Position numbers and translations under genes: made by a program
In this document: positions 3 through 64,000 of the stretch, one piece after another
Position numbering within the stretch: the first letter of the stretch is position 1
How the letters are laid out: the number at the start of each line of letters is the position of its first letter
The notes under the pieces: model-generated
Seen by the model: only the letters and a program-made list of their open reading frames with translations
Told to the model about the DNA's origin: nothing
Databases searched by the model: none
Source of the DNA: Paramoeba atlantica
Lineage: Eukaryota; Protista; Discosea
DNA length: 64,000 nucleotides
Assembly (NCBI GenBank): GCA_977017575.1
Contig: CDRNVI010000059.1
Coordinates: 372,001 to 436,000, forward strand
Direction of reading: 5' to 3'

Positions 3-2573
3 CTCATCCCCCACACCCTCGAGGTCCGCCCCCCCTCTGACCCGCTCCTCTTCCACGAGGGTACCCCCCTGACCCTCCAGGTGTGTCTCCAGGACACCCG
101 CCCCGCACGTGAGACCCCCCCCTTCGAGTCCCACGTGCTCTCCCCCGTGGTGTTCCAAGTAACGGGGAACGCCCAGCGCGTGGAACTCACGGGCTCGTTC
201 GTCACCGGGGGACGTAACACCAGCAGCCCTGGGGATACGAATCAACCCACACGACTGGAGCTCTACCGTGAGAGTCACTGTCCCCACGGGGTCGAGACGG
301 GGGGGGGAGAGCCACAACCGGGGAAGGCAGAAGAAGAGAACGAAGAGGGCGTCGCCTTCTCCACCCGGCTGTACCTCCCCCCCGGGTCCTACGCGTACCA
401 GTACGTGGTGGATGGGGAGACGCGGGTGTCCGAGGCGGCCCCGACGGGGGTGGGTGCAGGCGCCCAGGGGGTGTGTAACCTTTGTGAGGTGTCGGTGAGT
501 GCCCCCGCACGAGAGACCCAGTCCTTGCTGCATGTACGGTGGCTGCGGAGCACGGAGGGGGGTGTTGGGGGGTTTGAGGTGATTCCCAATGCAAAGGAAC
601 TGACGTATGTGCCCACTGCGGGGGATGTGGGGCATTTTTTGCGTGCGGAGGTTTTGGTGTATGATGAAGGGGAGTTTCAGTTTCCGTTGTTTGCGATTAC
701 GCCGAATATTGAGCCTGGGCTTCCGCTTTGCGCCCACATGGAGCTGAGTGGACGTTGTGTGGAGGGGGCGTCGTTGGTGCTGGATGTGGAGTATGCCGGT
801 GGGGAGGAGGGCCAGAGTGAGACACGGTGGTTCCGTGTTGTGGATCACGACGAAGAGGTGCCGCTGGATACGAATTCCCCTGCGTATGTTCTCTCCCCCT
901 CGGACGTCGCCCACCGTATCAAGGCGGAGTACCTCCCGGTACGCCAGGACGGGGAACGTGGGACCCCTGCGAGTCGGTACAGCGACGTCATCCTCCCCCG
1001 TCCCTGCGTCACGGGACTTGGTCCCATCACCGGGGAGGGGGTAGAGGGCGCCACACTCACGGTGGAGTGTGACGACCCCACGGCACTCCAACAAAAATGT
1101 CACCTCCAGTGGGGTCACTACGACCCTCGCTCCGGGGAATTCCACCCCCGTCCCGGCGCCCACGACCTGTCCTACCCCCTCACCCTTCCCGATGTCGGGG
1201 CTACTCTCGCGCTACAGTGTACCCTTAAAAGCGCATCCCCCACCCGTTTAAGCCCCACCCCGGAGCTTCGCCTGCGCTCGGACCCGATCCGCGCCGCCCC
1301 CCCGACCATCGAGGACTTTCGGCTCACCGGGTCCCCCACCGAGGGCAGTGCCCTCCAGCTGCACTACAGCTACCGCGGAGGTAACCCCGGGGCCCACCAG
1401 CTCGTGTGGTTCCGTGAGTCCACGGGGGGGGACGCGGGAGGGGGGGTACGGCAGGTCGTGGAGGAGACGACCCATGGCAAGGGGAGGGGGAGTAGGGGGA
1501 GTACCCGTAGGGGGAGTAGGGGGAGTACGGCTACGGGTACTAACACTACAAGTACTACGGGTATGAGTGCTACGGGTACGGCTACTCCGGGTATGAGTAC
1601 TACGGGTACGAGTCCTACGGGTACGGCTACTCCGGGTACGAGTGCTACGGGTACGAGTACTATGGGTACCTGTGGCTTGGCTGCGCCCCTGTGCCTACGT
1701 CGTGTGCTCACGACCGGGGATGTGGGGTACCGTATGGGTGCGATGCTCACACCTGTACGTAGTGACGGGGTACACGGGGCTACGGTGGAGGTGGTGGGGG
1801 GGTGTGCGGTGGGGGCAAGGGGGCCGCAGGTGGGGGGACCGATGAGGGTACGATGGGAGAGGGGAGGGGAGGGGGTGACTATAGGGGTAGTGGAGTACAC
1901 GTATGTTGGGGGGAAGGAGGGGGAGAGTCATGTGGAGTGGTATAAAGTGGAGGAGGGGGAGGGAGAAGAGGGGGAGGGGAGGCTGATTCAGGATGGGGGG
2001 AGGGAGTGCGTGGTGGATGGGAGTGAGGTGGGGGAGGGAGAGTTGATTCGGGTGGTGGTGACTCCGGTGCGGAGTGATGGGTTACGTGGGCCCTCGCGTG
2101 TGGTGGAGAGTCGGGTGTCATGGGATGCGGGTGATGGAGGTGAAGAGCTTGGAATGAAAACCGAGATAGACCCGAGCATCTCCATAATCCAGGGTGGCGA
2201 CGAGGCAAACACTGAGGAACTTAACCCTAATGTGGATGAAGTGGAATATCCTCGTGAACTTGAGACCGATGGGAATAGGTCATTGAGTGACAGGGGTCAA
2301 GATCCTGCGACGACCGTCGAGGTGCAGCCAAACACTCCCGTACTCCATGGCGACGAGGAGGAGGACGTTGAGGAGACCACTTGTGTGGATCTGTCGGAAC
2401 GTCCTCATGAACTTGAATCCGATGGGGATCGGTCATTGGAGAGCTCTTCTACAAAAGAGGAAGTCACAGCCACAGCAATGCAAGTGGCAGTTGAAGGAAA
2501 CGGTTTGGACGATCTGCCAGATGTTTCCGAAGTTTCCAGCTTGCAGGATGAGGTTGAACCTTACATACAATAG
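3..2573 (+). CDS. AIR9-like protein (A9 Ig-like repeats) with a CBM48/AMPK-beta-like module; 5'-truncated by the window
   Basis: Frame is open from base 3 (LIPHTLEVRPP...), so the GTG at 81 is not a true start. Repeated A9-type motifs (LSGRCVEGASL..YAGGEEGQSETRWFR; HRIKAEYLPVRQDGERG; LTGSPTEGSAL..YRGG; TPVRSDG). LYLPPGSYAYQYVVDG resembles CBM48. Confidence 0.7.
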   Translation, partial: LIPHTLEVRPPSDPLLFHEGTPLTLQVCLQDTRPARETPPFESHVLSPVVFQVTGNAQRVELTGSFVTGGRNTSSPGDTNQPTRLELYRESHCPHGVETGGGEPQPGKAEEENEEGVAFSTRLYLPPGSYAYQYVVDGETRVSEAAPTGVGAGAQGVCNLCEVSVSAPARETQSLLHVRWLRSTEGGVGGFEVIPNAKELTYVPTAGDVGHFLRAEVLVYDEGEFQFPLFAITPNIEPGLPLCAHMELSGRCVEGASLVLDVEYAGGEEGQSETRWFRVVDHDEEVPLDTNSPAYVLSPSDVAHRIKAEYLPVRQDGERGTPASRYSDVILPRPCVTGLGPITGEGVEGATLTVECDDPTALQQKCHLQWGHYDPRSGEFHPRPGAHDLSYPLTLPDVGATLALQCTLKSASPTRLSPTPELRLRSDPIRAAPPTIEDFRLTGSPTEGSALQLHYSYRGGNPGAHQLVWFRESTGGDAGGGVRQVVEETTHGKGRGSRGSTRRGSRGSTATGTNTTSTTGMSATGTATPGMSTTGTSPTGTATPGTSATGTSTMGTCGLAAPLCLRRVLTTGDVGYRMGAMLTPVRSDGVHGATVEVVGGCAVGARGPQVGGPMRVRWERGGEGVTIGVVEYTYVGGKEGESHVEWYKVEEGEGEEGEGRLIQDGGRECVVDGSEVGEGELIRVVVTPVRSDGLRGPSRVVESRVSWDAGDGGEELGMKTEIDPSISIIQGGDEANTEELNPNVDEVEYPRELETDGNRSLSDRGQDPATTVEVQPNTPVLHGDEEEDVEETTCVDLSERPHELESDGDRSLESSSTKEEVTATAMQVAVEGNGLDDLPDVSEVSSLQDEVEPYIQ

Positions 2574-6249: not shown

Positions 6250-7888
6250 CCCACCTGGCCACCCTCTGGAAAAGTAACCACCTGGCCACCCTAAGAAAAA
6301 GTAGCCACCTGGCCACCCTATGAAAAAGTGGCCACCTGGCCACCCTATGAAAAAGTGGCCACCTGGCCACCCTATGAAAAAGTGGCCACCTGGCCCCGCT
6401 TTGAAAAAGTGGCCACCTGGCCACCCTATCGAAAAGTAGCCACCTGGCCACCCTCTGGAAAAGTAACCACCTGGCCACCCTAAGAAAAAGTAGCCACCTG
6501 GCCACCCTATGAAAAAGTGGCCAGCTGGCCACCCTCTGGAAAAGTAGCCACCTGGCCACCCTATGGAAAAGTGGCCACCTGGCCACCCTATGAAAAAGTG
6601 GCCACCCTATCGAAAAGTGGCCACCTGGCCACCCTATGAAAAAGTAGCCACCTGGCCACCCTCTGGAAAAGTAGCCACCTGGCCACCATATGAAAAAGTG
6701 GCCAGCTGGCCACCCTATGAAAAAGTGGCCACCTGGCCACCCTATGAAAAAGTGGCCACCTGGCCACCCTATGAAAAAGTGGCCACCTGGCCACCCTATT
6801 AAAAAGTAGCCACCTGGCCACCCTCTGGAAAAGTAGCCACCTGGCCACCATATGAAAAAGTGGCCACCTGGCCACCCTATGAAAAAGTGGCCAGCTGGCC
6901 ACCCTCTGGAAAAGTGGCCACCTGGCCACCCTATCGAAAAGTGGCCACCTGGCTACCCCATAAAAAAGGGGCCACCTGGCCACCCTATGAAAAAGTGGCC
7001 ACCTGGCCACCCTATGAAAAAGTGGCCACCTGGCCACCCTATGAAAAAGTGGCCAGCTGGCCACCCTATGAAAAAGTGGCCAGCTGGCCACCCTATGAAA
7101 AAGTGGCCACCTGGCCATCCTATCGAAAAGTGGCCACCTGGCCACCCCATAAAAAAGGGGCCACTTGGCCACCCTATCGAAAAGTAGCCACCTGGCCACC
7201 CTATGAAAAAGGGGCCACCTGGCCACCCTATGAAAAAGTGGCCACCTGGCCACCCTATGAAAAAGGGGCCACCTGGCCACCCTATGAAAAAGTGGCCACC
7301 TGGCCACCCTATGAAAAAGTGGCCACCTGGCCACCCTATGAAAAAGTGGCCACCTGGCCATCCTATCGAAAAGTGGCCACCCGGCCACCCCATAAAAAAG
7401 TGGCCACTTGGCCACCCTATCGAAAAGTAGCCACCTGGCCACCCTATGAAAAAGTGGCCAGCTGGCCACCCTATGGAAAAGTGGCCACCTGGCCACCCTA
7501 TGAAAAAGTGGCCAGCTGGCCACCCTATGAAAAAGTGGCCAGCTGGCCACCCTATGGAAAAGGGGCCACCTGGCCATCCTATCGAAAAGTGGCCACCTGG
7601 CCACCCCATAAAAAAGGGGCCACCTGGCCACCCTATGAAAAAGTGGCCACCTGGCCACCCTATGAAAAAGTGGCCACCTGGCCACCCTATGAAAAAGTGG
7701 CCAACTGGCCACCCTATGAAAAAGTGGCCAGCTGGCCACCCTATGGAAAAGGGGCCACCTGGCCATCCTTTCAAAAAGTGGCCACCTGGCCACCCCATAA
7801 AAAAGGGGCCACCTGGCCACCCTATCGAAAAGTAGCCACCTGGCCGCCCTATGAAGAAGTGGCCACCTGGCCACCCTATGAAAAAGTG
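6250..7888. repeat. 27-bp palindromic minisatellite, main array (~60 units) upstream of the rDNA
   Basis: Tandem GCCACCTGGCCACCCTATGAAAAAGTG with variants; source of the WPPYEKVAT and KWPPGHPM pseudo-ORFs. Confidence 0.95.
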
Positions 7889-8906: not shown

Positions 8907-9103
8907 TGGAAAAAGTGGCCACCTGGCCACCCCCCAAAAAAAGTGGCCACCTGGCCACCCCCCAAAAAAAGTGGCCACCTGGCCACCCCCCAAAAAAAGT
9001 GGCCACCTGGCCACCCCCCCAAAAAAAGTGGCCACCTGGCCACCCCCCCAAAAAAAGTGGCCACCTGGCCACCCCCCCAAAAAAAGTGGCCACCTGGCCA
9101 CCA
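8907..9103. repeat. Variant 27-28 bp minisatellite with CCCCCCAAAAAAA linker
   Basis: Same GTGGCCACCTGGCCAC core, about 7 units, ending ~260 bp before 18S. Confidence 0.9.
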
Positions 9104-47555: not shown

Positions 47556-48955
47556 CGCTTCTTGCTAGCACTGTGCGTGAGGGTAACACGTACTCTTTTC
47601 GTTCCTTTCTTATTTTCAAAGAAAGTACAACATTCGCAAATGCGTAATGTTTTGCCTCAGGCTTTGTTAGAGCCCTTTCAGCTGTCCCCAATTGCTATGA
47701 TCACCAATTGCTATCATGGCGGAAGTGGCGGAGTGGCAATAATTCAAAGTTTGAATCACATGGTGCTCAGACGGCGAGTTCAAACCCACTCATCGCAATA
47801 TTCCCGGCGGCCTCACTCTAAGAGGCTGGGCTGATAACCGACTAAGCCCAGTACTCGGAGGACCGTCCCGGACCCTCCCCTCAGGGAACCAGCTCCCTTA
47901 CCCGGCTTACACCTCTTGGGTAAGCCGTGTTGACGTACAGTTCGTCGACGCAGCGTGTTGGCAACAGCACGTTGGTGCCGCCTTGGACAAGCGGAAACTG
48001 GTAGAGGACGTCGGCCCCGGAACTTCCAAATCTGTCTGTGAAGGGTCTGGCTTGCCAGTGACCATCCGGAGCAATCCGGAAATGATGATCACCCTGGTGG
48101 GGAGGGGGGGGCAGGGGGTACCCATCGGAATTGTTGAAAAACTAGTTATTTTGTCATTCAATTTGATTCATACGTCTACCTTTTTTCCTTGCGCCTCCTC
48201 CTTCCTCTGCGGCCTTGCGTGTCACACACTTCCGGGTAAAGTTTGGCCTTTGTAGGTGTATTATCGGCACAGGGTGGAGAAATATCGAATGAAATCAAAG
48301 AGTATACAGGTATAGAAGGCTCGAAACTCTCAAAAAAGTGGTCTAGGAGTTGATTTGGGAAAAATATATTTTTTCACTTTCACCCATAAATTTTTAGTTT
48401 CTTTTTGCAAAATTTCAAAAATTGCTATGATCAGAACTAGTTATTTTGTCACTAAATTCGATTCATACATATTGGTGAAACGATATTTTGGTGAAACGAT
48501 ATCGGGCACGAAATCGGGCCACAAATCGGGTACGACGAATTAACCTATGGTAGCGAGGGAGTAGTGCAGATTGAAAGGGGCGAGGGAGATACGAAGCAAC
48601 AGGCGTGGCAGATTCCCACTGAAAAGAAATGGTATCTCCCCGCACGAAAAACGCCTTTTCGCTTTCTAGCTCGTAGACAAACTTCGTGCAGGGAGATACC
48701 ATTTCTTTTCAGTGGGAATCTGCCACACACAACAACAACAAAGACACTGATATTGAAATATCAGTTGACGGATTTGTAGTTCATACTAGTAACGAAGCAT
48801 ACAAAAATACAATATCACCTAGAATTTGCGCGGTGAAGCACCTTCCACAGCCCTGTCATCCATGTATCCTAGTTACTTTCTTTGGAAATGCCTCTTTAGG
48901 GCGAATGTGTCTTCCAGCAACTCGCCTTCATATTCATTTGACCTTCTGACCTGTT
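47556..48955 (+). repeat. Segmental duplication with ~56056-57853
   Basis: Colinear SINE-B, family C body, D hairpin and LINE 3' end; the second copy is ~400 bp longer, matching the nested SINE-B3 insertion. Confidence 0.85.
47718..48089 (+). mobile_element. SINE-B copy B1 (plus an inverted head fragment at ~47437-47545)
   Basis: A-box-like TGGCGGAGTGG, B-box-like GAGTTCAAACCC, structured core, TCCGGAGCAATCCGGA hairpin and GATGAT tail; 5' boundary uncertain. Confidence 0.65.
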
Positions 48956-49219
48956 AGAGGAAGTAAAGATAGCTGTCCTTTCTGTTAGTTACTCCAAATA
49001 CGATGCGTCGCATGCGATTTATTTGAGTTTCAATCTCCTGCAATTCCGATTGATTTAAATTCCAAGTTCCCGGATTGTAGTATACAACAGGCTGTACAAG
49101 CGTTTTGTATATTTGAAACTTACACAAAGCGGAAAGAGAAGAAGACCAAATTGCTTTAAGTTTATGCATTACGCTCCAACCGAGCCGTACTCTCTCGTTT
49201 GGATTTGACCCGCCGTCCT
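48726..49219 (-). pseudogene. Deleted LINE remnant (post-RT segment fused to a LINE 3' end)
   Basis: NERVRLGWSVMHKLKAIWSS...INRMRRIVFG; 48726-48955 matches the LINE 3' end at 57625-57853. Confidence 0.75.
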
Positions 49220-52061
49220 CCAACCAACAACCAACCAACCATCACTGGGATAATAAATTAATATGTCCCAGTTGAAAGCTTCACAAATTTCTCCTACCCA
49301 TAAAACACTTTGGCGGTGTCCACAAAACTAACATATTCACCAGAAGCTTTTCAAAAACATCTTGCAACAACTTCCATGTATCCTAATCATTCGAGGTGGA
49401 TGACGTTCCAGTACTTAGTCAAAGAATTGTGATATGAAATCGACTTTTCATTTTCAGCACAAACGGTTTACCTAATAAAACATTTTCACGCGAAACAACA
49501 GCATATCACCTTATCACACTATCCCTCACCTGTTCAGAAAATGCGATCAAGGGGGGTATGAGGGGGGTATCATTTCTTTGGTGTTCGTAATACGTTCTTA
49601 GTTCGCGATCTATCGTCTTTCCCCTGACCCTTTTCTGTCTTTTTGACGCAGTTCTCTCTTTTACTGAGTGTCAATGTGTTGTTGGACTGTACGCGTTCTT
49701 GTTATCTTGTGCATTTCGTTTCCGTTTCTATCTCTGTATGGTTGCCTTTGCTAACTGTCCTACTTTTTGGCAATATTTTTACGTGCTCACCATGGGTGCA
49801 TATTTGGCTAGAGGTAAGTTTGCGCTGCATTTTGCTGCCATTAGAATCACCATTGGTATGGTTTTTGCGCTTGTCTTCTGCATGAGGAATCTCGCCGTAG
49901 AATCTCAAGGCCTTTTCTCCCTTGCTTATTTTACTTGCTTGTTTAGCCACCCAGTCTGCCATATAATTATGTGGATTTTCGTTATGCGCTTTAACTTTTA
50001 CGCAGTAGAAGCGCTTTGTCCCTCTTAGCGAAATATATGTTTCTTGCAATTTTTGAAGTATAGCGCCTCCCTCAAACGATTTAAATCCTATGAATCTGAA
50101 CCTATGGATAGCTCCATGAAAGAAATCCCAAACATACTCAGAGTCCGTGTGCAAAATGACATCTCCATCGTAGGACAATGCGATGAGAAGAGCCTCGTGC
50201 GCGGCAAAGGATTCTATTTCCTGAATAGATTGAGAGAATTCATGATGAGGTTTTAACCCAAGAGATATAGAGGGCTCGCGGCGGCGTAGGCAGACTACCC
50301 CACAACCTGTGTGAGTTTCATCCTTTTTAACGATTCGTGCTCCATCTGTATAAATGTGTGTTTCATTTGGCCGGATTGGAAATGGTTGCCGCCCTTCTTC
50401 AATGTATTGCAGGGTTTCGTAGCACCCCTTGTTTACCCCCTTTACCAAAAGATTTTCCCATAGTTTTGAAGTTGTTTTAGTGTACGAGGGCCTGGGTTCA
50501 AGCTGATTTTGAAGATTTTCAAGTTTCTTGCACCATTGAGACCGATTTTGACCAAGTTTTAGAATCTCAGATACGTCAGAATGTAACTCTTTTGCACATC
50601 TTTCTGATAGCGAGGGCTTGGAACTCTCATCATTCGTTCTCCATAGTACGGCAGTTACGAATGGAGTAGGGTGACGAATAAGGTGGCCTACTAGCGAGGC
50701 ACGTTGCAATTGTATCACAGTATTGGGCTTTAGGTCAGTGGGGTAAAGAGAGTCTACTCTGCAATGCGCCTCTTTCGAGCACTTGACTCCCAATACGACC
50801 CTCCTCATTCTGTTTATTTGGACTTCCACTTCATGTAGCTCTTTCTGATTTAAATTCCAAGTCCCTGGATTAAAGTAGACCACTGATTGAACGAGGGACT
50901 TAAAGATGTGTAATTTGCTTTTTGGTGATATAGTAGAACTCCATATGGCTTTGAGTTTGTGCATTATTGCCCAACCTAATCGTACACGTTCTTGTGAGTT
51001 TGAGCTGCGATCCTCCTCGTTCTGAGTGCTACCCAAGTAGCGATAAGATGTAACTTTTGGTATATCGCCGAGTGTCGCTACTTGCAAAGGTCTTCCATCA
51101 TCCTTAACTTTACCTAGTGTCATCCATGCCGTTTTGTTTGGTCCGACATTTATTTTCAAATTAGCTTTTTCTGCGGAAGTTTTAAGTTTGTGCAACATTG
51201 TGCTTAGCTCCTCCTTGGATTCGGAGAAGAGAACTATATCATCAGCATAATTTATATCAGATACACGCAGTTCCTTTAGGCCTCTGCTCCTAGTTCCTGA
51301 GCTGTGTGTCACAAGCCCTAAGCGATTTATGTCGATAGATTCAACCAAAATACGATCAAGCACCATAATAAACAGGTATGGGGCCAGAACGTCACCTTGA
51401 AGAGTCCCCTGTAAAAGTGGAAATGAGTCTGTATTACCGTATGGTGTTTTCACGTGCGATTTGAGATCTTGATAAATACACATGATCGTAGAACTGAGAT
51501 TTTCGGGAATATCGAAAGCACGTAATGTCTCTTTTATCGCAGCGAATGATAATGAAGGAAAGGCTTGTTGAAAGTCGACGAAACAGACGAACACCCCAGC
51601 CCCTCGGCGCGATTTTTCCATTATTTCTAAAAACGTTGCCTGAGCGCCAGCTGTTGAGCGGTTAGGTCGAAATCCGAATTGATTCCCGCGAAGCGAACTT
51701 TCCACTGCTGGTTGTATTCTGTCTAAAATGATTCGATTCAAAATCTTCACTACATGATTCACAAGACAGATTGGTCTCCAATTTGTGAGTGAGCGCAAGT
51801 TACCTTTCTTTGGCAATGGGACCTGCAATATCGATTTCCAAGATTCATCCGCTTTTCCGGTTTTTTGTACTTCGTTCATTATATCCAGGAGAGCATTACG
51901 CAAGTCTTAATCAGCTGAAATAGCACGTAGAGATTCAACCGGGATATTATCATCGCCTGTAGCTTTTCCTGACTTAATCTTTACCATCGCAGCAGTTAGT
52001 TCCTCCACTCGAAATTCACCATCATCAATTTTTGCCAGTCGTTTTGGTGCAGTAGGTAAAC
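49220..52061 (-). mobile_element. Non-LTR retrotransposon (RT + RNase H), 5' part removed at element A5
   Basis: 733-aa ORF 51903-49702: WRPICL, NQFGFRP, FVDFQQAF, GTLQGDVLAP, YADD, YRYLG; RNase H IYTDGA / QEIESF / HTDSEY / AHNENPHNYMAD. Upstream in-frame KATGDDNIPVE beyond one TAA; (GGTT)n tail at 49220-49240. Confidence 0.92.
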
Positions 52062-56211: not shown

Positions 56212-56986
56212 GGCGGAGGTGGCGCAGTGGCAATAATTCAAAGTTTGTATCACATGGTGCTCAGACGGCGAGTTCAAACCCACTCATCGCAATATTCCTG
56301 GCGGCCTCACTCTAAGAGGCTGGGCTGATAACCGACTAAGCCCAGTACTCGGAGGACCGTCCCGGACCCTCCCCTCAGGGAACCAGCTCCCTTACCCGGC
56401 TTACAGCTCTTGGGCAAGCTGTGTTGACGTACAGTTCGTCGACGCAGCGTGCTGGCAACAGCACGTTGGTGCCGCCTTGGACAAGCGGAAACCCCAAAAT
56501 CCAATCCAAATCATTCCGGATTGCTCCGGATGGTCACTGGCAAGCCAGGCCCTTCACAGACAGATTTGGAAGTTCCGAGGCCGACGTCCTCTACCAGTTT
56601 CCGCTTGTCCAAGGCGGCACCAACGTGCTGTTGCCAACACGCTGCGTCAACGAACTGTACGTCAACATGGCTTACCCAAGAGGTGTAAGCCGGGTAAGGG
56701 AGCTGGTTCCCTGAGGGGAGGGTCCGGGACGGTCCTCCGAGTACTGGGCCCAGTCGGTTCTCAGCCCAGCCTCTTAGAGTGAGGCCGCCAGGAATATTGC
56801 GATGAAGAGTGAGGCCGCCAGGAATATTGCGATGAGTGGGTTTGAACTCGCCGTCTGAGCACCATGTGCTTCGGCCACTAAACTAAGCGGAAACTGGTAG
56901 AGGACGTCGGCCTCCGGAACTTCCAAATCTGTCTGTGAAGGGTCTGGCTTGCCAGTGACCATCCGGAGCAATCCGGAAATGATGAT
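56212..56986 (+). mobile_element. SINE-B copy B2, interrupted by B3
   Basis: Colinear with B1 once 56493-56894 is removed. Confidence 0.75.
56493..56884 (-). mobile_element. SINE-B copy B3 nested antisense in B2, 10-bp TSD
   Basis: TSD AAGCGGAAAC at 56483-56492 and 56885-56894; (TTGGA)n tail; internal ~36-bp duplication near 56780-56815. Confidence 0.85.
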
Positions 56987-57624: not shown

Positions 57625-60600
57625 ACAGAATAACAACAAAGACACTGATATTGAAATATCAGTTAACGGATTTGTAGTTCATACTAGTAACGAAGCATAC
57701 AAAAATACAATATCACCTAGAATTTGCGCGGTGAAGCACCTTCCACAGCCCTGTCATCCATGTATCCTAGTTACTTTCTTTGGAAATGCCTCTTTAGGGC
57801 GAATGTGTCTTCCAGCAACTCGCCTTCATATTCATTTGACCTTCTGACCTGTTGGCTCTATAACTCTGTTTTTGCCTAGGGCACAGAGCGAGACGCGTTG
57901 TTAATTCAAAACCTTGTTTACGCAACCAGTGTATATAAAAAGGGTATGTATATTTTGAAAAGAAAGAAAATAATAATGAGCCCATTCAAACACCTCCCTA
58001 TGCATGAAAATTCAGTCCTCATTTGTTTAATCAGAACTCCTCGTAGATTTTTGTGTTGTACATTCCTCCTCACAATGTAATCGTTTAATTTGTGGAGTGC
58101 GCGTCGTAACTGTAGGTACGAAAACCTTGGTTTTACGTTGTACACGTTGTTTTTCATTATTCTGGAGCCTTTTTGGGCAAACTTTCTCATTGGATCTTGT
58201 TTGCTTGGCCTTTGATCGATCACGTTTGTGCGTTTCTGATTTAGAATTTCTACTATTTGATTCCTTCGCGGATCTGTTTATTGGTTGTACGGGGCTGGGG
58301 TTTATGTCTTTGGCCGTAACCTGTGGGAGCGCGAAAGCTGGCAAAGTGCGTTTTTGCAAAGTTTTAATTTTCTTATCAGTACTCAATGGAATAGGGTCTC
58401 TCCTTTTCGTGTGTGATTTATCATCAAAGCCACGGTAACAGAAGGAGCAATTTACTTCAACTTGTTGCGAGGCGCGTTTCGCAAGCCAATCCGATCTGGC
58501 ATTGTGCGGATTACCTTCATGACCCCTGACTTTAATGCAGTAAATGTTATGATTCTCCTCTATCTAAAAGCAAATCCGGGTTATTTTTGATAAAAGCTCC
58601 GAATTTTCGAATGACTGAAATCCGATTAAAGAAAACCTCTTCCGAATTACGTGAAAGAAGTCCCAGACATACGCCGAATCCGTGTGAATAACAGCGTCCT
58701 TGGAATGTGTCCTTGCAAGGCTCAACGCCACATAGACAGCGTATAGTTCTGCGGCTGTTATGGTGAGCGATATGTGTGTCGGTGGTTTCAATCCTATAAG
58801 TGTCTTCCCGACTCGTCCCCCCAACAACACGATACCACACCCTGAAGAAGTTCTCGTTCTCGTCGTTTTTAGTGCTCCATCGGTGTATAGATGCAATGAA
58901 TCTGATAGAAAATGGAAAGGTACTGACCCCTCTTCAACAAATTGTAGCGTTGCATAGTTTTCCTCATCTTGCAAGCTGCGTACATTCTTTCCCCACCCAG
59001 GAGATTCAATAGGCTTATAGGTTGGGCGGGGCTCCAGGCGTGATTTCAAACGATCCACATTCGAACGCCATCGTGACCGATCCTTGGAAATTTGAATTAC
59101 TTCTGATAGGGACAAGCCAAGGCCATCGGAACATGCTTCGGAAAGAGAGGCGTGTGTCGTTTTACCTCGCTCGCGCCAAAGAATAGCAACACTGAATGGA
59201 GAATCGTGCCGAAGAAGGTGACCAATAAGCTGCGCCCGTTGAGTCTTTGCTGTGGTGCTGAGCTTCAAATCATTCTGATATAGAGCTTCTAATCGAATAG
59301 ACCGTTTTCCACCCGGTGCGAGCGTAGTTGGTAGACGGTGGGCCTTACAACCTGCAGGGTGTGGGTTCGATTCCCGCTATCGACAAAACTCGCAACCTGG
59401 CGGCCTCACTTCAAAGGGAAAGCGATCAGGAGTGCCTTCAAGGCCCACACCCAACCCCGCTCCCCTGGAGGACCGACCCGGAACCGCCGAGCTGAACCAG
59501 GTTCCAGCGCAGCCGCTAAATTGCGAGCTGCTTACGCAAAGGAGGCTTGAGACACAGCCTACACGATGCAACGGGGTTGGACGCCAGTCCTGGTATCTAC
59601 GGTTGGGTAGCCGTTCTCGGGCCGCAAGGCGTCGAGTGCCGCCTGGGAAGGGGGTAGCAAGACGATGAAGGTCGGTGACCTGAGGCTCTACCCTAACGGT
59701 TGGCGCTGCAGAGCCCTCCGTGTTCTTCTCTCTCTTCTCTCTCTCTCTCTCTCTTCCACCCCATGTACGCCCAACATTGCATACCATTCTTCGCATCTTA
59801 TTCATCTCAATGTCGAGTTCCCGAAGTTTGGAAGTCGATATATCCCACGCCCCTGCATTGTAGTTCACTACCGGCATGACTAGCGTGCGGAATACTGTCA
59901 TTCGACTAGACATTGGAAGAGGCGATTTCCATATTGACCGGAGTTTGTACATCACCGCCCATCCTAATCTCAAACGTTCGTTGGGTGCAACATTGCGATC
60001 ATCACTCTCCTGTGTGCTGCCCAGGTACCGGTATTTGTAGACTCAAGGAATTTGCCCTACCCATGGTACTCTAAGTTCACCTTCGTGCCAAGGGTCATCC
60101 AGGCAGTTTTATTGTTTCCTAGATTAATGCACAGATTAGATTTCCTAGCGACTTTAAAGAGACTTTCTAACATGTCGGCCAGTTCGACCTTAGTTGGCGC
60201 GAATAGGACTAAATCATCGGCGTAATCAATGTCTGAGATACACAAATGCTTCTCACCCCGGCTCTTCGTTCCCGTGCAATAGGTTATTAGACCGGACTCC
60301 TTTGCGTTAATTGCTTCAGCCATTATCCGATCGAGAACCATGATGAAAAGATAGGGGGCGAGAACATCTCCTTGCAAAGTTCCATTGTTGATTGAAAAGG
60401 GTTCCATATTCCCATGCGGTGTTCTTACGAAAAATTGTACCCCAGCATACATACTCATAATTACTTTGGTGAGGTGTTCGGGTATATGAAAAGCTTTCAA
60501 TGCACTTACATTGGCGGAGAATGATACTGATGGAAAATCCTGCTTGAAATCCACGAATGCCACTGCAACTCCCTGACTTCTCAAAGCCTTGGCGGAGATT

Positions 60601-62820
60601 TCTACGAAAGTAGCTTGTGCACCAGCAGTCGATCGGTGTGGGCGAAAACCGAATTGATTCGGCCGAAGCATGTTTTCTACCGCTGGTTGAATTCGGTCTA
60701 ATACCATCCTGTTCATTATCTTGACCACGTGATTTACTATGCATACCGGCCTCCAGTTGGACAGATTGCCCAGATTTCCCTTTTTTGGAAAAGGCACTTG
60801 CAATATCATTTTCCTTTTGTCTGATGCAATTCCTGTCAAGCAAAGTCCCTATATCCTATATGAAGCAAAGTCCCCATCAATCCCTCATTTGCGCTCAATG
60901 ACCTTAACGCTTCGATTGGAATACCATCGGAACCTGCCGCTTTTACCGACTTCACTTTCAGTAGTGCGGAACACAGCTCTGATATTGTAAACTCTCCATC
61001 TTGTATTCCAAAGAGGCTCTTTGTCGAAAGAGGAAAGTTTACCAGACCACCTGTGTTCATCTCTTGCTGCCCGATCGCCTGAAAGTGATTTTGGACAGTG
61101 CGGAGGCTATCCCGAACAGTATCACCAAACAAAGAAAATTCCTTTCTATTGTCACCTACAATGTTTCGTATGGTGCGGTAAGCGCTCTTCGGACGTTTGT
61201 ATAAATCTTCCGCAAGCACGTTGCATTCTTCTTTTATGCTTTTTCCAATCTTTTCCGCATGTGCCCTGGCAAAAGCATCAAATCTGCGCGGATTTCGAGC
61301 AACTTTCACAGTAGCTTTCATGTCGAGCTACCCGGGACCCGGCGCTTCATCCTTATTTGTATTGTGATTAGAAACTCGGGAAGGAAGCTCTCCGGAAGCA
61401 TTTTTTACGACATTAGCGAATTTGTCCCACAACAAAGGACCGACTGCATCATCTCTTGTTCGTTTGTTGCCACCCTCCATTGCCAATTCTACGTTCTTGA
61501 CAAATTTATCCTTTATTACCTCATTCCGAAGAGATCCCCAAAAAGGCACTTGTTTACCAGCTTTGCTTTGCACCTTCCACCGTATTTTCAACTGTGCTCT
61601 CACCACGCAGTGGCGCGTCGGTAATGGGGCTAGAAGCACCCGCTGAGAGCGAATCGCTGAACTAAAGCGTGTGTTTGTAATGATGTGATCCAGCTGCTTC
61701 GTGAGTCCCAGAGGATGTTTCACATTAGGCGGGAACCGATACGTCCACTTCCTCCCCGCACTACAACATTCGTGCGCGGATTTTGCTCCTATAGATAGCA
61801 GAAACTTCCTAAATTGTTTCGCCCTTTTAGAAAAACACTTCACCCCCTGCGGCGTTTGCAGAGGCGAGTTCATATCTCCACATATAAGCTTCAATGCCGA
61901 CTGTGAGCCATGCCATGCATCAAAGAGCTTCTCATCAAACTCAGACTGTATAGCTTGTTTGGCGCCTGCTGTTGGAGAGTAAACATTGAATACACTCGCT
62001 CTAACATCACCAAGTTCAATAGTTCCCCTCATCATTCTATCACTGATCTTGTCAACATGCATAAGTAATAGATTTATCATTGCCATCCCGTTATACCCAT
62101 TAACGGCACACATAAGATATAGATGAATGCTCATGCCACCCAGGTAGAGCCGACGGTGAATAATTGGCTCCTCACCTTTAAACGACAAACGCGTTTCCTG
62201 CAGAGTCATTAAGGAAACACCGTAACTCCTCATGAATGCCACGACTTGATGTAGTCGATAGCATCCCCGTAGAGCAAACTCGTCCGTGCTTTTGCACTTC
62301 AACGTATCCACGTTAATAGTACTCACCACAAACCCACCTCTCATAGCTTGCATCTTGGGCTGCTCTCGGACTCCACGCCGAAAACAGTTTTTGCGCTTCC
62401 GATCTCGTCTTGACCGGCGCTTTGGAAGAAGACCCACTCTGCCGCCTAGAATAAGGATCCTGTCGTCCCTCGGGGGAAACGGGAGAAGCTGACCATTCAT
62501 CAAGTCATACTTGATAAGCCAGGAAGACTTATCCAGCGATGAATGAACAACTCCTTCCCAGAGAATTGCTCGTGCGTCGTAAGCCTTACTCCAAACGACT
62601 GCTACCCGTTTGCCCACTTTCAAAGCACCTGTCATACGATAAAGTGCACGCGGCCGGAGTTTAGCCACACCCTCTCTCTGCTGTGGGGGGAGAAAAAGGT
62701 TGCCCCGACCACACCTGGCCGACCGTAGCTTTTCACAGACTCTTAACATGCTATCGAACGGTCCGGAGGCCTCCGCCATTTTGTACTAACTTGTTAATAC
62801 AAAAAGTGATTAATACAAAA
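57625..62820 (-). mobile_element. Full-length non-LTR retrotransposon (N-terminal domain + APE + RT + RNase H), now disabled
   Basis: TSD AATCTGCCGC at 57615-57624 and 62821-62830; ATG at 62779. APE motifs STINVDTL, LQETR, NVYSPT, ICGDMNS, QLDHII; RT 60839-60057; RNase H LYTDGA / AELYAV / HTDSAY. In-frame TAG at 61330-61328, several frameshifts and a SINE insertion. Confidence 0.93.
59315..59753 (+). mobile_element. tRNA(Val-TAC)-derived SINE-A copy A1, 8-bp TSD
   Basis: tRNA-like head with CTTACAA loop and GTGGGTTCGATTCCCGC T-arm; (CT)n tail; TSD TTCCACCC at 59307-59314 and 59754-59761; removal restores the LINE frame (CNVGRTWGGKRSIRLEALYQNDLKLSTT). Confidence 0.9.
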
Positions 62821-63535: not shown

Positions 63536-63545
63536 ATCCTGCAAA

Positions 63546-63617
63546 AAAAAATTCAAATCATTCCGGATCGCTCCGGACGGTCACTGGCAAGCCATACCCT
63601 TCACAGACAGATTTGGG
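63546..63617 (-). mobile_element. SINE-B 3' fragment
   Basis: Reverse complement of CCAAATCTGTCTGTGAAGGG...CCGGAGCGATCCGGAATGAT. Confidence 0.75.
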
Positions 63618-63618
63618 C

Positions 63619-64000
63619 GGTGCGAGCGTACTTGGTAGACGGTGGGCCTTACAACCTGCAGGTTGTGGGTTCGATTCCCGCTATTGACAAAACTCGCAAC
63701 CTGGCGGCCTCACTTCAAAGGGAAAGCGATCAGGAGTGCCTTCAAGGCCCACACCCAACCCCGCTCCCCTGGAGGACTGACCCGGAACCGCCGAGCTGAA
63801 CCAGGCTCCAGCGCAGCCGCTAAATTGCGAGCTGCTTACGCAAAGGAGGCTTGAGACACAGCCTACACGATGCAACGGGGTGGACGCCCGTCCTGGTAGC
63901 TACGGTTGGGTAGCCGTGCTCGGGCCGCAAGGCGTCGAGTGCCGTCTGGGAAGGGGGTAGCAAGACGATGAAGGTCGGTGACCTGAGACTCTATCCTAAC
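63619..64000 (+). mobile_element. SINE-A second copy, runs off the window
   Basis: Near-identical to 59315 onward. Confidence 0.9.

Follow-up and report, generated by a model that had tools for sequence, protein, structure and literature searches.

The window analysed here, a stretch of 64,000 nucleotides from the Paramoeba atlantica assembly GCA_977017575.1 (contig CDRNVI010000059.1, positions 372,001 to 436,000, forward strand), contains on its minus strand a long interspersed nuclear element (LINE), LINE H, with an APE-type endonuclease open reading frame (ORF), a reverse transcriptase (RT) and an RNase H domain. LINE H is degraded, with at least one frameshift and with stop codons. Between its RT and RNase H domains lies a 439 bp insert in plus orientation (59315-59753), here called SINE-1. 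It very probably belongs to a family of non-autonomous retroposons that was mobile until recently, a short interspersed nuclear element (SINE), in which a 73-nt head of probable tRNA descent is combined with a family-specific body and a 3' module of LINE type. Coordinates are window positions, and labels of the form C.. and L.. denote contigs and loci of the same genome (Table 1).

An 8 bp target site duplication (TSD), TTCCACCC, borders the insert on both sides, and the junctions read GACCGTT TTCCACCC / GGTGCGAGCGTAGTTGGTAGA ... CCGTGT TCTTCTCTCTCTTCTCTCTCTCTCTCTCTC / TTCCACCC CATGTACG. When the 400 nt to the left of the insert were searched against the genome, two paralogous LINE copies (C40 and C86, 96% identical) were found with the site unoccupied: a single TTCCATCC, i.e. 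TTCCA(T/C)CC, is embedded in an uninterrupted GACCGTTTTCCATCCCATGTACGCCC, with the octamer present once and without the insert. This empty site is the strongest, and an independent, proof of insertion. Excision of 59315-59761 (447 nt or 149 codons, comprising the insert and one TSD copy) yields an unbroken LINE frame on the minus strand, which translates across the junction as RRMVCNVGRTWGGKRSIRLEALYQ / EMNKMRRMVCNVGRTWGGKRSIRLEALYQNDLKLSTT and continues into the RNase H domain. LINE H was thus already in place when the window copy of SINE-1 landed within its coding sequence. The insert contains no ORF and has no similarity to the LINEs of the window. A second SINE-1 copy (96-98% identity) starts at 63617/63619, where it adjoins the 3' end of a copy, in minus orientation, of a second family (SINE-2, see below), and is cut by the end of the window. 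The initial annotation, made from the sequence of the window, had described the 439 bp insert with its TSD, the restoration of the LINE frame upon excision and a further copy from 63619 onwards, and all three are confirmed.

Table 1. Coordinates of SINE-1, LINEs and other features (window positions unless a contig or locus label is given)
Feature	Position	Strand	Remarks
Host LINE H	57632..62779	-	Pfam domains; 3' end from comparison with the C86 copy; span given as far as the outer edge of the APE ORF
LINE H, APE (endonuclease) ORF	61328-62779	-	Pfam
LINE H, RT	60057-60839	-	Pfam
LINE H, RNase H	58564-59268	-	Pfam
LINE H, 3' end	57632-57680		
TSD, left copy TTCCACCC	59307..59314	+	read from sequence; single-copy empty site in paralogous LINEs
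SINE-1, tRNA-like head	59315..59385	+	consensus 73 nt; window copy without the first 2 nt (GC)
SINE-1, A-box-like stretch G(A/G)GCGTAGTTGG	59320-59331	+	tRNA positions 8-19
SINE-1, T arm	59361-59377	+	B box inside a 5 bp T stem
SINE-1, B box GGTTCGATTCC	59364-59374	+	perfect; tRNA positions 52-62
SINE-1, body	59386..59681	+	family-specific, non-coding, 59% G+C
SINE-1, 3' module	59682..59723	+	CTAAC, hairpin GGCGCT-GC-AGAGCC, then CTCCGTGT
SINE-1, pyrimidine microsatellite tail	59724..59753	+	mixed (CTT)/(CT)n here
TSD, right copy TTCCACCC	59754..59761	+	read from sequence; empty site in paralogous LINEs
SINE-1, second copy	63617..64000	+	98.4% to consensus over 384 nt; stopped by window end
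SINE-1 array	C40:961-999 kb		period ~1.0-2.4 kb
SINE-1 array	C61:0.5-16 kb		period ~3.74 kb
SINE-1 array	C71:36-50 kb		period ~3.42 kb
SINE-1 array	C12:136-164 kb		period ~6.49 kb
SINE-1 array	C65:0-14 kb		period ~5.2 kb
SINE-2, window copy	47760-48095	+	without the 51-nt 3' module
SINE-2, fragment	63540-63616	-	
SINE-2, fragment	56297-56835		
SINE-2, full-length copy	L016, ~430-850		ends in the 51-nt module and (CTT)n
LINE A tail	49219-49241	-	other LINE loci L075-L085
Further C/H-type LINE end	48727-48790		
Recurrent (TCT)n end	C2:403775; C9:446717, 513395; C12:594499; C18:113856; C21:76543; C47:97396; C63:418081; C69:365360; C84 (3 sites); C87:122743; C94:100671		
Complete rDNA unit	9364-15645		

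Copies of SINE-1 and their spread

A DNA search of the genome with SINE-1 returned 208 first-look candidates, of which 40 were scored, with identities of 94-100%. A pattern that covers the anticodon-like loop as well as the B box has 117 genome matches, about 105 of them with SINE-1 sequence, and the 3' module is matched exactly at 71-79 sites. The copy number is roughly 100-200, on many contigs. The copies are short (about 415 nt plus tail), non-coding and dispersed, and neither Rfam nor Pfam contains anything relevant to SINE-1 beyond a tRNA match below threshold. As the 30 best-matching copies are on average 97.0% identical to the consensus and 95.1% to each other, the family is young. Most copies start 2 nt further upstream than that of the window, with GC-GGTGCGGG; the window copy may lack the initial GC, or the two bases may be hidden in its junction. 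In the family as a whole the tail consists of (CTT)n/(TTC)n, with a length of 5 to 225 nt depending on the copy. The tail had been annotated as (CT)n, which is correct in so far as the window copy has a pyrimidine tail, but the (CT)n run occurs in this copy only and is not the tail of the family.

Of 22 SINE-1 loci whose flanks differ from one another, 15 have direct repeats of 7-14 nt on either side; among 462 cross-paired (mismatched) flanks, repeats of at least 7 nt occur in 1.7%. The TSDs vary in length (7-14 bp), and many begin with T-rich bases. Several copies are truncated at the 5' end with their tails intact; L090, L095, L098 and L100 are examples, and the truncated copies span consensus positions 158-, 163-, 229-, 318- and 334-425. 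One truncated copy opens with an inverted segment. Variable TSDs and 5' truncation with intact tails are typical of an element that an endonuclease-bearing LINE has copied by target-primed reverse transcription. The mobility of the element, as initially proposed, is borne out by the empty site, by the flanking repeats of these 15 loci and by the truncated copies.

At five loci (L006, L008, L020, L026 and L027) 11-23 extra bases are present between the upstream TSD and the 5' end of SINE-1 (around positions 1470-1500 of each locus). In these bases the target sequence is repeated imperfectly, and in L008 a stray GCGGTGC, identical to the first 7 nt of SINE-1, is located upstream of the repeated target. 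Such junctions suggest that the reverse transcriptase jumped between templates as it completed the copy.

Not every copy represents an insertion of its own. About 40 of the head-pattern matches sit in regular arrays on five contigs, with periods of approximately 1.0-2.4 kb (C40), 3.4 kb (C71), 3.7 kb (C61), 5.2 kb (C65) and 6.5 kb (C12), and several loci are present twice, on different contigs, with identical flanks. From the fixed periods it follows that tandem duplication of larger units raised the copy number after insertion, and the number of copies exceeds the number of insertions. The arrays and the doubled loci are also what would be expected if SINE-1 had multiplied through segmental or tandem duplication, or in the manner of a DNA transposon, without any reverse transcription. 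Such an origin is highly improbable, as 22 loci possess unrelated flanks, 15 of them with TSDs of 7-14 nt, the tails differ in length, 5'-truncated copies and a precise empty site exist, and the sequence contains no terminal inverted repeats. Duplication is a secondary amplifier and is disfavoured as the primary mechanism.

The tRNA-like head, the 3' module and the LINEs

The A and B boxes of the SINE-1 head stand at the spacing found in tRNAs, as read from the sequence. The A-box-like sequence, GGGCGTAGTTGG, differs essentially at T8 (position 8) from the A-box consensus of the TRGCNNAGTGG type. For comparison, 38 unique tRNAs were collected from the fetched loci, 15 from AT-rich contigs (see below) and 23 species assigned to the host. 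Over its initial 73 nt the consensus can be aligned with host tRNAs in register and without gaps, and the closest of those sampled is tRNA-Met(CAT) with 45/73 identical positions, followed by Ala(AGC) with 42/73 and by Arg(CCT) and Asn(GTT) with 40/73 each. The best local score of the head against the 23 host species is 22, a value reached by none of 500 shuffled heads (mean 11.3, maximum 18). Given the gap-free match in register, the score relative to shuffles and the perfect B box on the one hand, and negative tRNA detectors on the other, the head is called tRNA-derived, though not with full confidence: the evidence is good but not complete. The head appears to have kept the boxes of a type-2 promoter and lost the cloverleaf fold. 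Judging from the A and B boxes, SINE-1 would be transcribed by RNA polymerase III (Pol III).

A degenerate tRNA-Val(TAC) had been proposed as the head. Its tRNA-like nature stands, with Met(CAT) the closest sampled host tRNA over the 73 positions; its assignment to valine is not supported. TAC is only a triplet within the 8-nt loop of the head, and two transitions separate the loop CTTACAA from CTCATAA of tRNA-Met(CAT). A genome search for the combination of a TTACAC loop and GGTTCRA retrieved nothing host-like. Matches on C12 that had the look of a genuine tRNA proved to be SINE copies of greater age.

The body possesses no match in Rfam, which was also the only resource in which it was compared in view of the conserved central domains that mark SINE superfamilies such as CORE, V, Deu, Ceph, Nin and Meta. 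It shares two short motifs, CCTGGCGGCCTCACT and GAGGACCGNCCCGGA, with SINE-2. The body had been described as structured, a claim that is left unsupported because the predicted fold, with a minimum free energy of -169 kcal/mol, is no more stable than those of shuffled sequences (-165.8 +/- 6.1; z = -0.53).

The 3' module of about 45 nt consists of TAAC, a short hairpin and CCGTGT, to which the (CTT)n repeat is attached. The last 51 nt of SINE-1, GACTCTACCCTAACGGTTGGCGCTGCAGAGCCCTCCGTGT(CTT)n, match the SINE-2 terminus with 84% identity, and both modules form a 6 bp hairpin with a 2-nt loop (GGCGCT-GC-AGAGCC in SINE-1, AGCTCT-GG-AGAGCT in SINE-2), whose outermost pair, G-C in SINE-1 and A-T in SINE-2, displays a compensatory change as far as read from the sequence. 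Apart from this module with its (CTT)n tail and the two internal motifs, the two families differ, with SINE-2 having another head, ATGGTGCTCAGACGGCGAGTTCAAACCCGCTCATCGC, and for the most part another body. The module is probably a recognition end borrowed from a LINE, and SINE-1 and SINE-2 presumably use the same partner. An apparent third variant of the module turned out to be SINE-2 with a deletion. In several duplicated loci (L013, L015, L017, L021 and L028) SINE-1 sits within SINE-2 at an identical site.

The LINEs of the genome were searched with the RT-RNase H ORF at 49702-51903 as a protein query, which gave 963 first-look candidates. The matches belong to several families, with identities to the query of 43-98%; in the protein collection the LINE RT-RNase H finds only unnamed environmental relatives with at most 47% identity. 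For families A, B, C, D, E and E2, and likewise for the host LINE H, the 3' ends were delimited by comparing copies. In all six sampled families the end is built of (T)TAAC, a short hairpin, a few bases of the type (CAG)TGT(CTT) and a microsatellite specific to the family: (TGGT)n in A, (GTTG)n in B, (TGT)n/(TTG)n in C, D and H, and (TTGGA)n in E and E2. LINE H, near 57632, has TAAC, the hairpin CTGATATTTCAATATCAG, TGTCTT and (TGT)n. These ends have the appearance of a 3' signal system of the stringent type, with one T/G-rich repeat unit per family. The 3' layout of SINE-1 (TAAC, hairpin, GTGT, microsatellite) runs parallel to them, and C(A/C)GTGTCTT immediately before the repeat is common to the SINE-1 end and the LINEs of C/H type.

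A further recurrent end, CTCAGATAGTAGGCAATCTGGGGTT(TCT)n, i.e. C(T/A)CAGATAGTAGGCAATCTGGGGTT(TCT)n, with a hairpin and a TTC-type repeat, is present at 14 or more sites (Table 1). The missing LINE with a (CTT)n tail might terminate in this way, or the end may be that of another SINE.

The parallel with LINE ends might also be expected if SINE-1 were a deletion derivative of a LINE that has lost its coding part, after the manner of RIME, NARTc and SIDER, which are the sole kind of short retroposon described from trypanosomatids (PMC2323293). This origin is very improbable. The tail of SINE-1 is (CTT)n and not A-rich, its 5' end resembles a tRNA and not a LINE, and it has no similarity to either LINE of the window; with the 13 sampled LINE 3' regions it has in common only 10-14-mers as expected by chance.

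The proposed tRNA-derived SINE would propagate as follows. Pol III would transcribe master copies from the internal promoter, and the 3' hairpin and repeat would be recognised by the RT of the predicted partner, an endonuclease-bearing LINE that belongs to the APE-RT-RNase H type so abundant in this genome. The SINE RNA would then be copied into the nicked target by target-primed reverse transcription, of which TSDs of 7-14 bp, 5'-truncated copies and a precise empty site are the marks seen.

Several observations weigh against this picture. ARAGORN detects a tRNA neither in the window nor in the SINE-1 consensus. The best Rfam family for SINE-1 is tRNA, at 22.3 bits and so under the gathering score of 29, in an alignment that omits the D arm and takes GUUGGUA/UAUCGAC as the acceptor stem, and seven other SINE-1 copies have no Rfam match at E <= 1. 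In register, the acceptor and D stems of the head are unpaired. Once the T arm is removed, the similarity to host tRNAs becomes marginal (8 of 500 shuffles equal it), and the 38 compared tRNAs, 23 of them assigned to the host, include neither a clear parent tRNA nor any tRNA-Val. The tail of the window copy is without a built-in Pol III terminator of T4 or longer. A part of the copy number derives from tandem or segmental duplication and not from retroposition, as set out above. Finally, none of the six sampled LINE families bears a (CTT)n tail or the module, and every one of the exact genome-wide matches to the 3' module belongs to SINE-1 or SINE-2. The partner would therefore be a LINE of the APE-RT-RNase H group that either escaped sampling or has died out.

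The failure of ARAGORN, the low Rfam score, the unpaired stems and the dependence of the similarity on the T arm would all fit a retroposon whose head does not descend from a tRNA, with boxes that arose by chance or belong to another small-RNA gene and with transcripts supplied by RNA polymerase II read-through or by polycistronic transcription, as in other retroposons of kinetoplastids. The genomes of kinetoplastids, to which the host appears to belong (see below), are transcribed polycistronically, which favours the same explanation. It is nevertheless unlikely. A head of other origin would hardly match a host tRNA over 73 nt without gaps and in register, score as a whole above all 500 shuffles, keep the box spacing of a tRNA and have tRNA as its best Rfam family; moreover, the 5' end of SINE-1, when compared with the spliced leader of the host, does not contain the leader sequence. 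The descent of the head from a tRNA is the preferred reading.

Host lineage and comparison with known elements

The host of SINE-1 is classed as a kinetoplastid-type euglenozoan. The genome carries AAAGATACAGTTTCTGTACTTTGTTG/GT, the conserved 3' part of the kinetoplastid and diplonemid spliced leader (a 19-mer of the leader has no match in literature full text), as well as two full-length KMP-11 genes (150-151 bits). In the window, intronless ORFs follow each other on the same strand, and one of them (1380 aa) fuses the C-terminal domain of a capping guanylyltransferase with a cap N7-methyltransferase domain, the architecture of kinetoplastid Cgm1. The kinetoplastid affinity stated in the initial annotation is upheld by the leader, the Cgm1-type ORF and KMP-11. 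In the protein collection the Cgm1-like ORF retrieves itself and two weak matches; as neither this protein nor those of the LINEs have close named relatives, the host is not a well-sampled species.

The window also contains a complete rDNA unit, whose large subunit (LSU) gene gives one contiguous match of 3.77 kb to the Rfam model. The LSU of trypanosomatids consists of multiple pieces with spacers, for which a contiguous 3.77 kb leaves little room. The spacer upstream of the rDNA is occupied by 27-29 bp repeats of the GTGGCCACC type (6251-7888 and 8910-9102). Host tRNA genes form tight clusters of mixed strands, with nine genes in 1.05 kb at L047 (C53:222.3-223.4 kb), and whole clusters are duplicated between the contig pairs C56/C72 and C26/C59 (L064-L069), which suggests haplotigs or recent segmental duplication. 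The contigs C137-C214 (e.g. L031, L038, L044 and L048-L060) have a G+C content of about 33-36%, compared with about 46-48% in the contigs of the window's kind. Their tRNA genes are dispersed singly, on one strand per contig, and include about 25 identical copies of tRNA-Lys(CTT), each embedded in a repeat unit, 2 kb or longer, with 85-90% identity between units. These contigs probably come from another organism within the assembly, or else from a genome compartment of very different make-up. Two matches to the SINE module (C166 and C185) fall within the same range of contig numbers.

Among known elements, SINE-1 comes closest to the SINE2/tRNA class, with which it shares a length of about 0.4 kb, the non-coding sequence, a tRNA-related head with A and B boxes, a family-specific body, a 3' hairpin module with a short tandem repeat, variable TSDs and 5' truncations. 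The eel UnaSINE1, which is paired with UnaL2, and the vertebrate SINEs mobilised by CR1 or RTE are tRNA SINEs of this build, with a LINE-type 3' stem-loop and a microsatellite tail. SINE-1 differs from the class in its kinetoplastid-type host, in a head so decayed that tRNA detectors reject it, and in a (CTT)n tail that is unlike the T/G-rich repeats of the LINEs sampled in its genome.

RIME (Trypanosoma brucei), NARTc (T. cruzi) and SIDER (Leishmania) are likewise short, non-coding passengers of APE-type non-LTR elements within the same broad lineage, and their TSDs of about 12-13 bp overlap the 7-14 bp of SINE-1. They are, in contrast, deletion derivatives of ingi and L1Tc with a 79 bp signature and A-rich tails, whereas SINE-1 begins with a tRNA-like head, carries a (CTT)n tail and does not resemble the LINE sequences with which it was compared. 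SINEs elsewhere are related to tRNA, 5S or 7SL RNA, RIME and NARTc are deletions of ingi and L1Tc, and SIDERs bear the 79 bp signature and A-rich ends (PMC2323293), which agrees with the initial characterisation of the trypanosomatid short retroposons as LINE-deletion derivatives. The retroelements reported from trypanosomatids and Bodo saltans comprise only CRE/SLACS, ingi, VIPER and TATE (PMC12278014, PMC4728078). A Euglena assembly paper gives only an automatic class (SINE, 0.11%).

Full-text literature searches, which do not cover Repbase, Dfam and SINEBase, yielded no description of a tRNA-headed SINE from kinetoplastids, Euglenozoa or Bodo saltans. Exact 26- and 32-nt words of SINE-1 match no public metagenome contig. 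By the searchable literature, SINE-1 is provisionally regarded as unreported. Its kind is ordinary and its mechanism textbook, and its lineage is new as far as that literature goes. We lean, with somewhat better than even confidence, towards SINE-1 being the first canonical tRNA-derived SINE of Pol III type to be documented in Kinetoplastea, possibly in Euglenozoa, recently active and served by a stringent LINE partner that recognises a hairpin plus microsatellite.

The gain would be one of taxonomic breadth and not a new principle. If the interpretation is true, free-living kinetoplastids kept or gained a classical SINE-LINE system that is absent from parasitic trypanosomatids, and the four published clades of kinetoplastid retroelements would be joined by a fifth kind, a SINE that pairs a tRNA head with a 3' signal of LINE type. 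It would give a natural retroposon driven by Pol III in a lineage of very unusual transcription, and would supply insertion markers for population work on free-living kinetoplastids.

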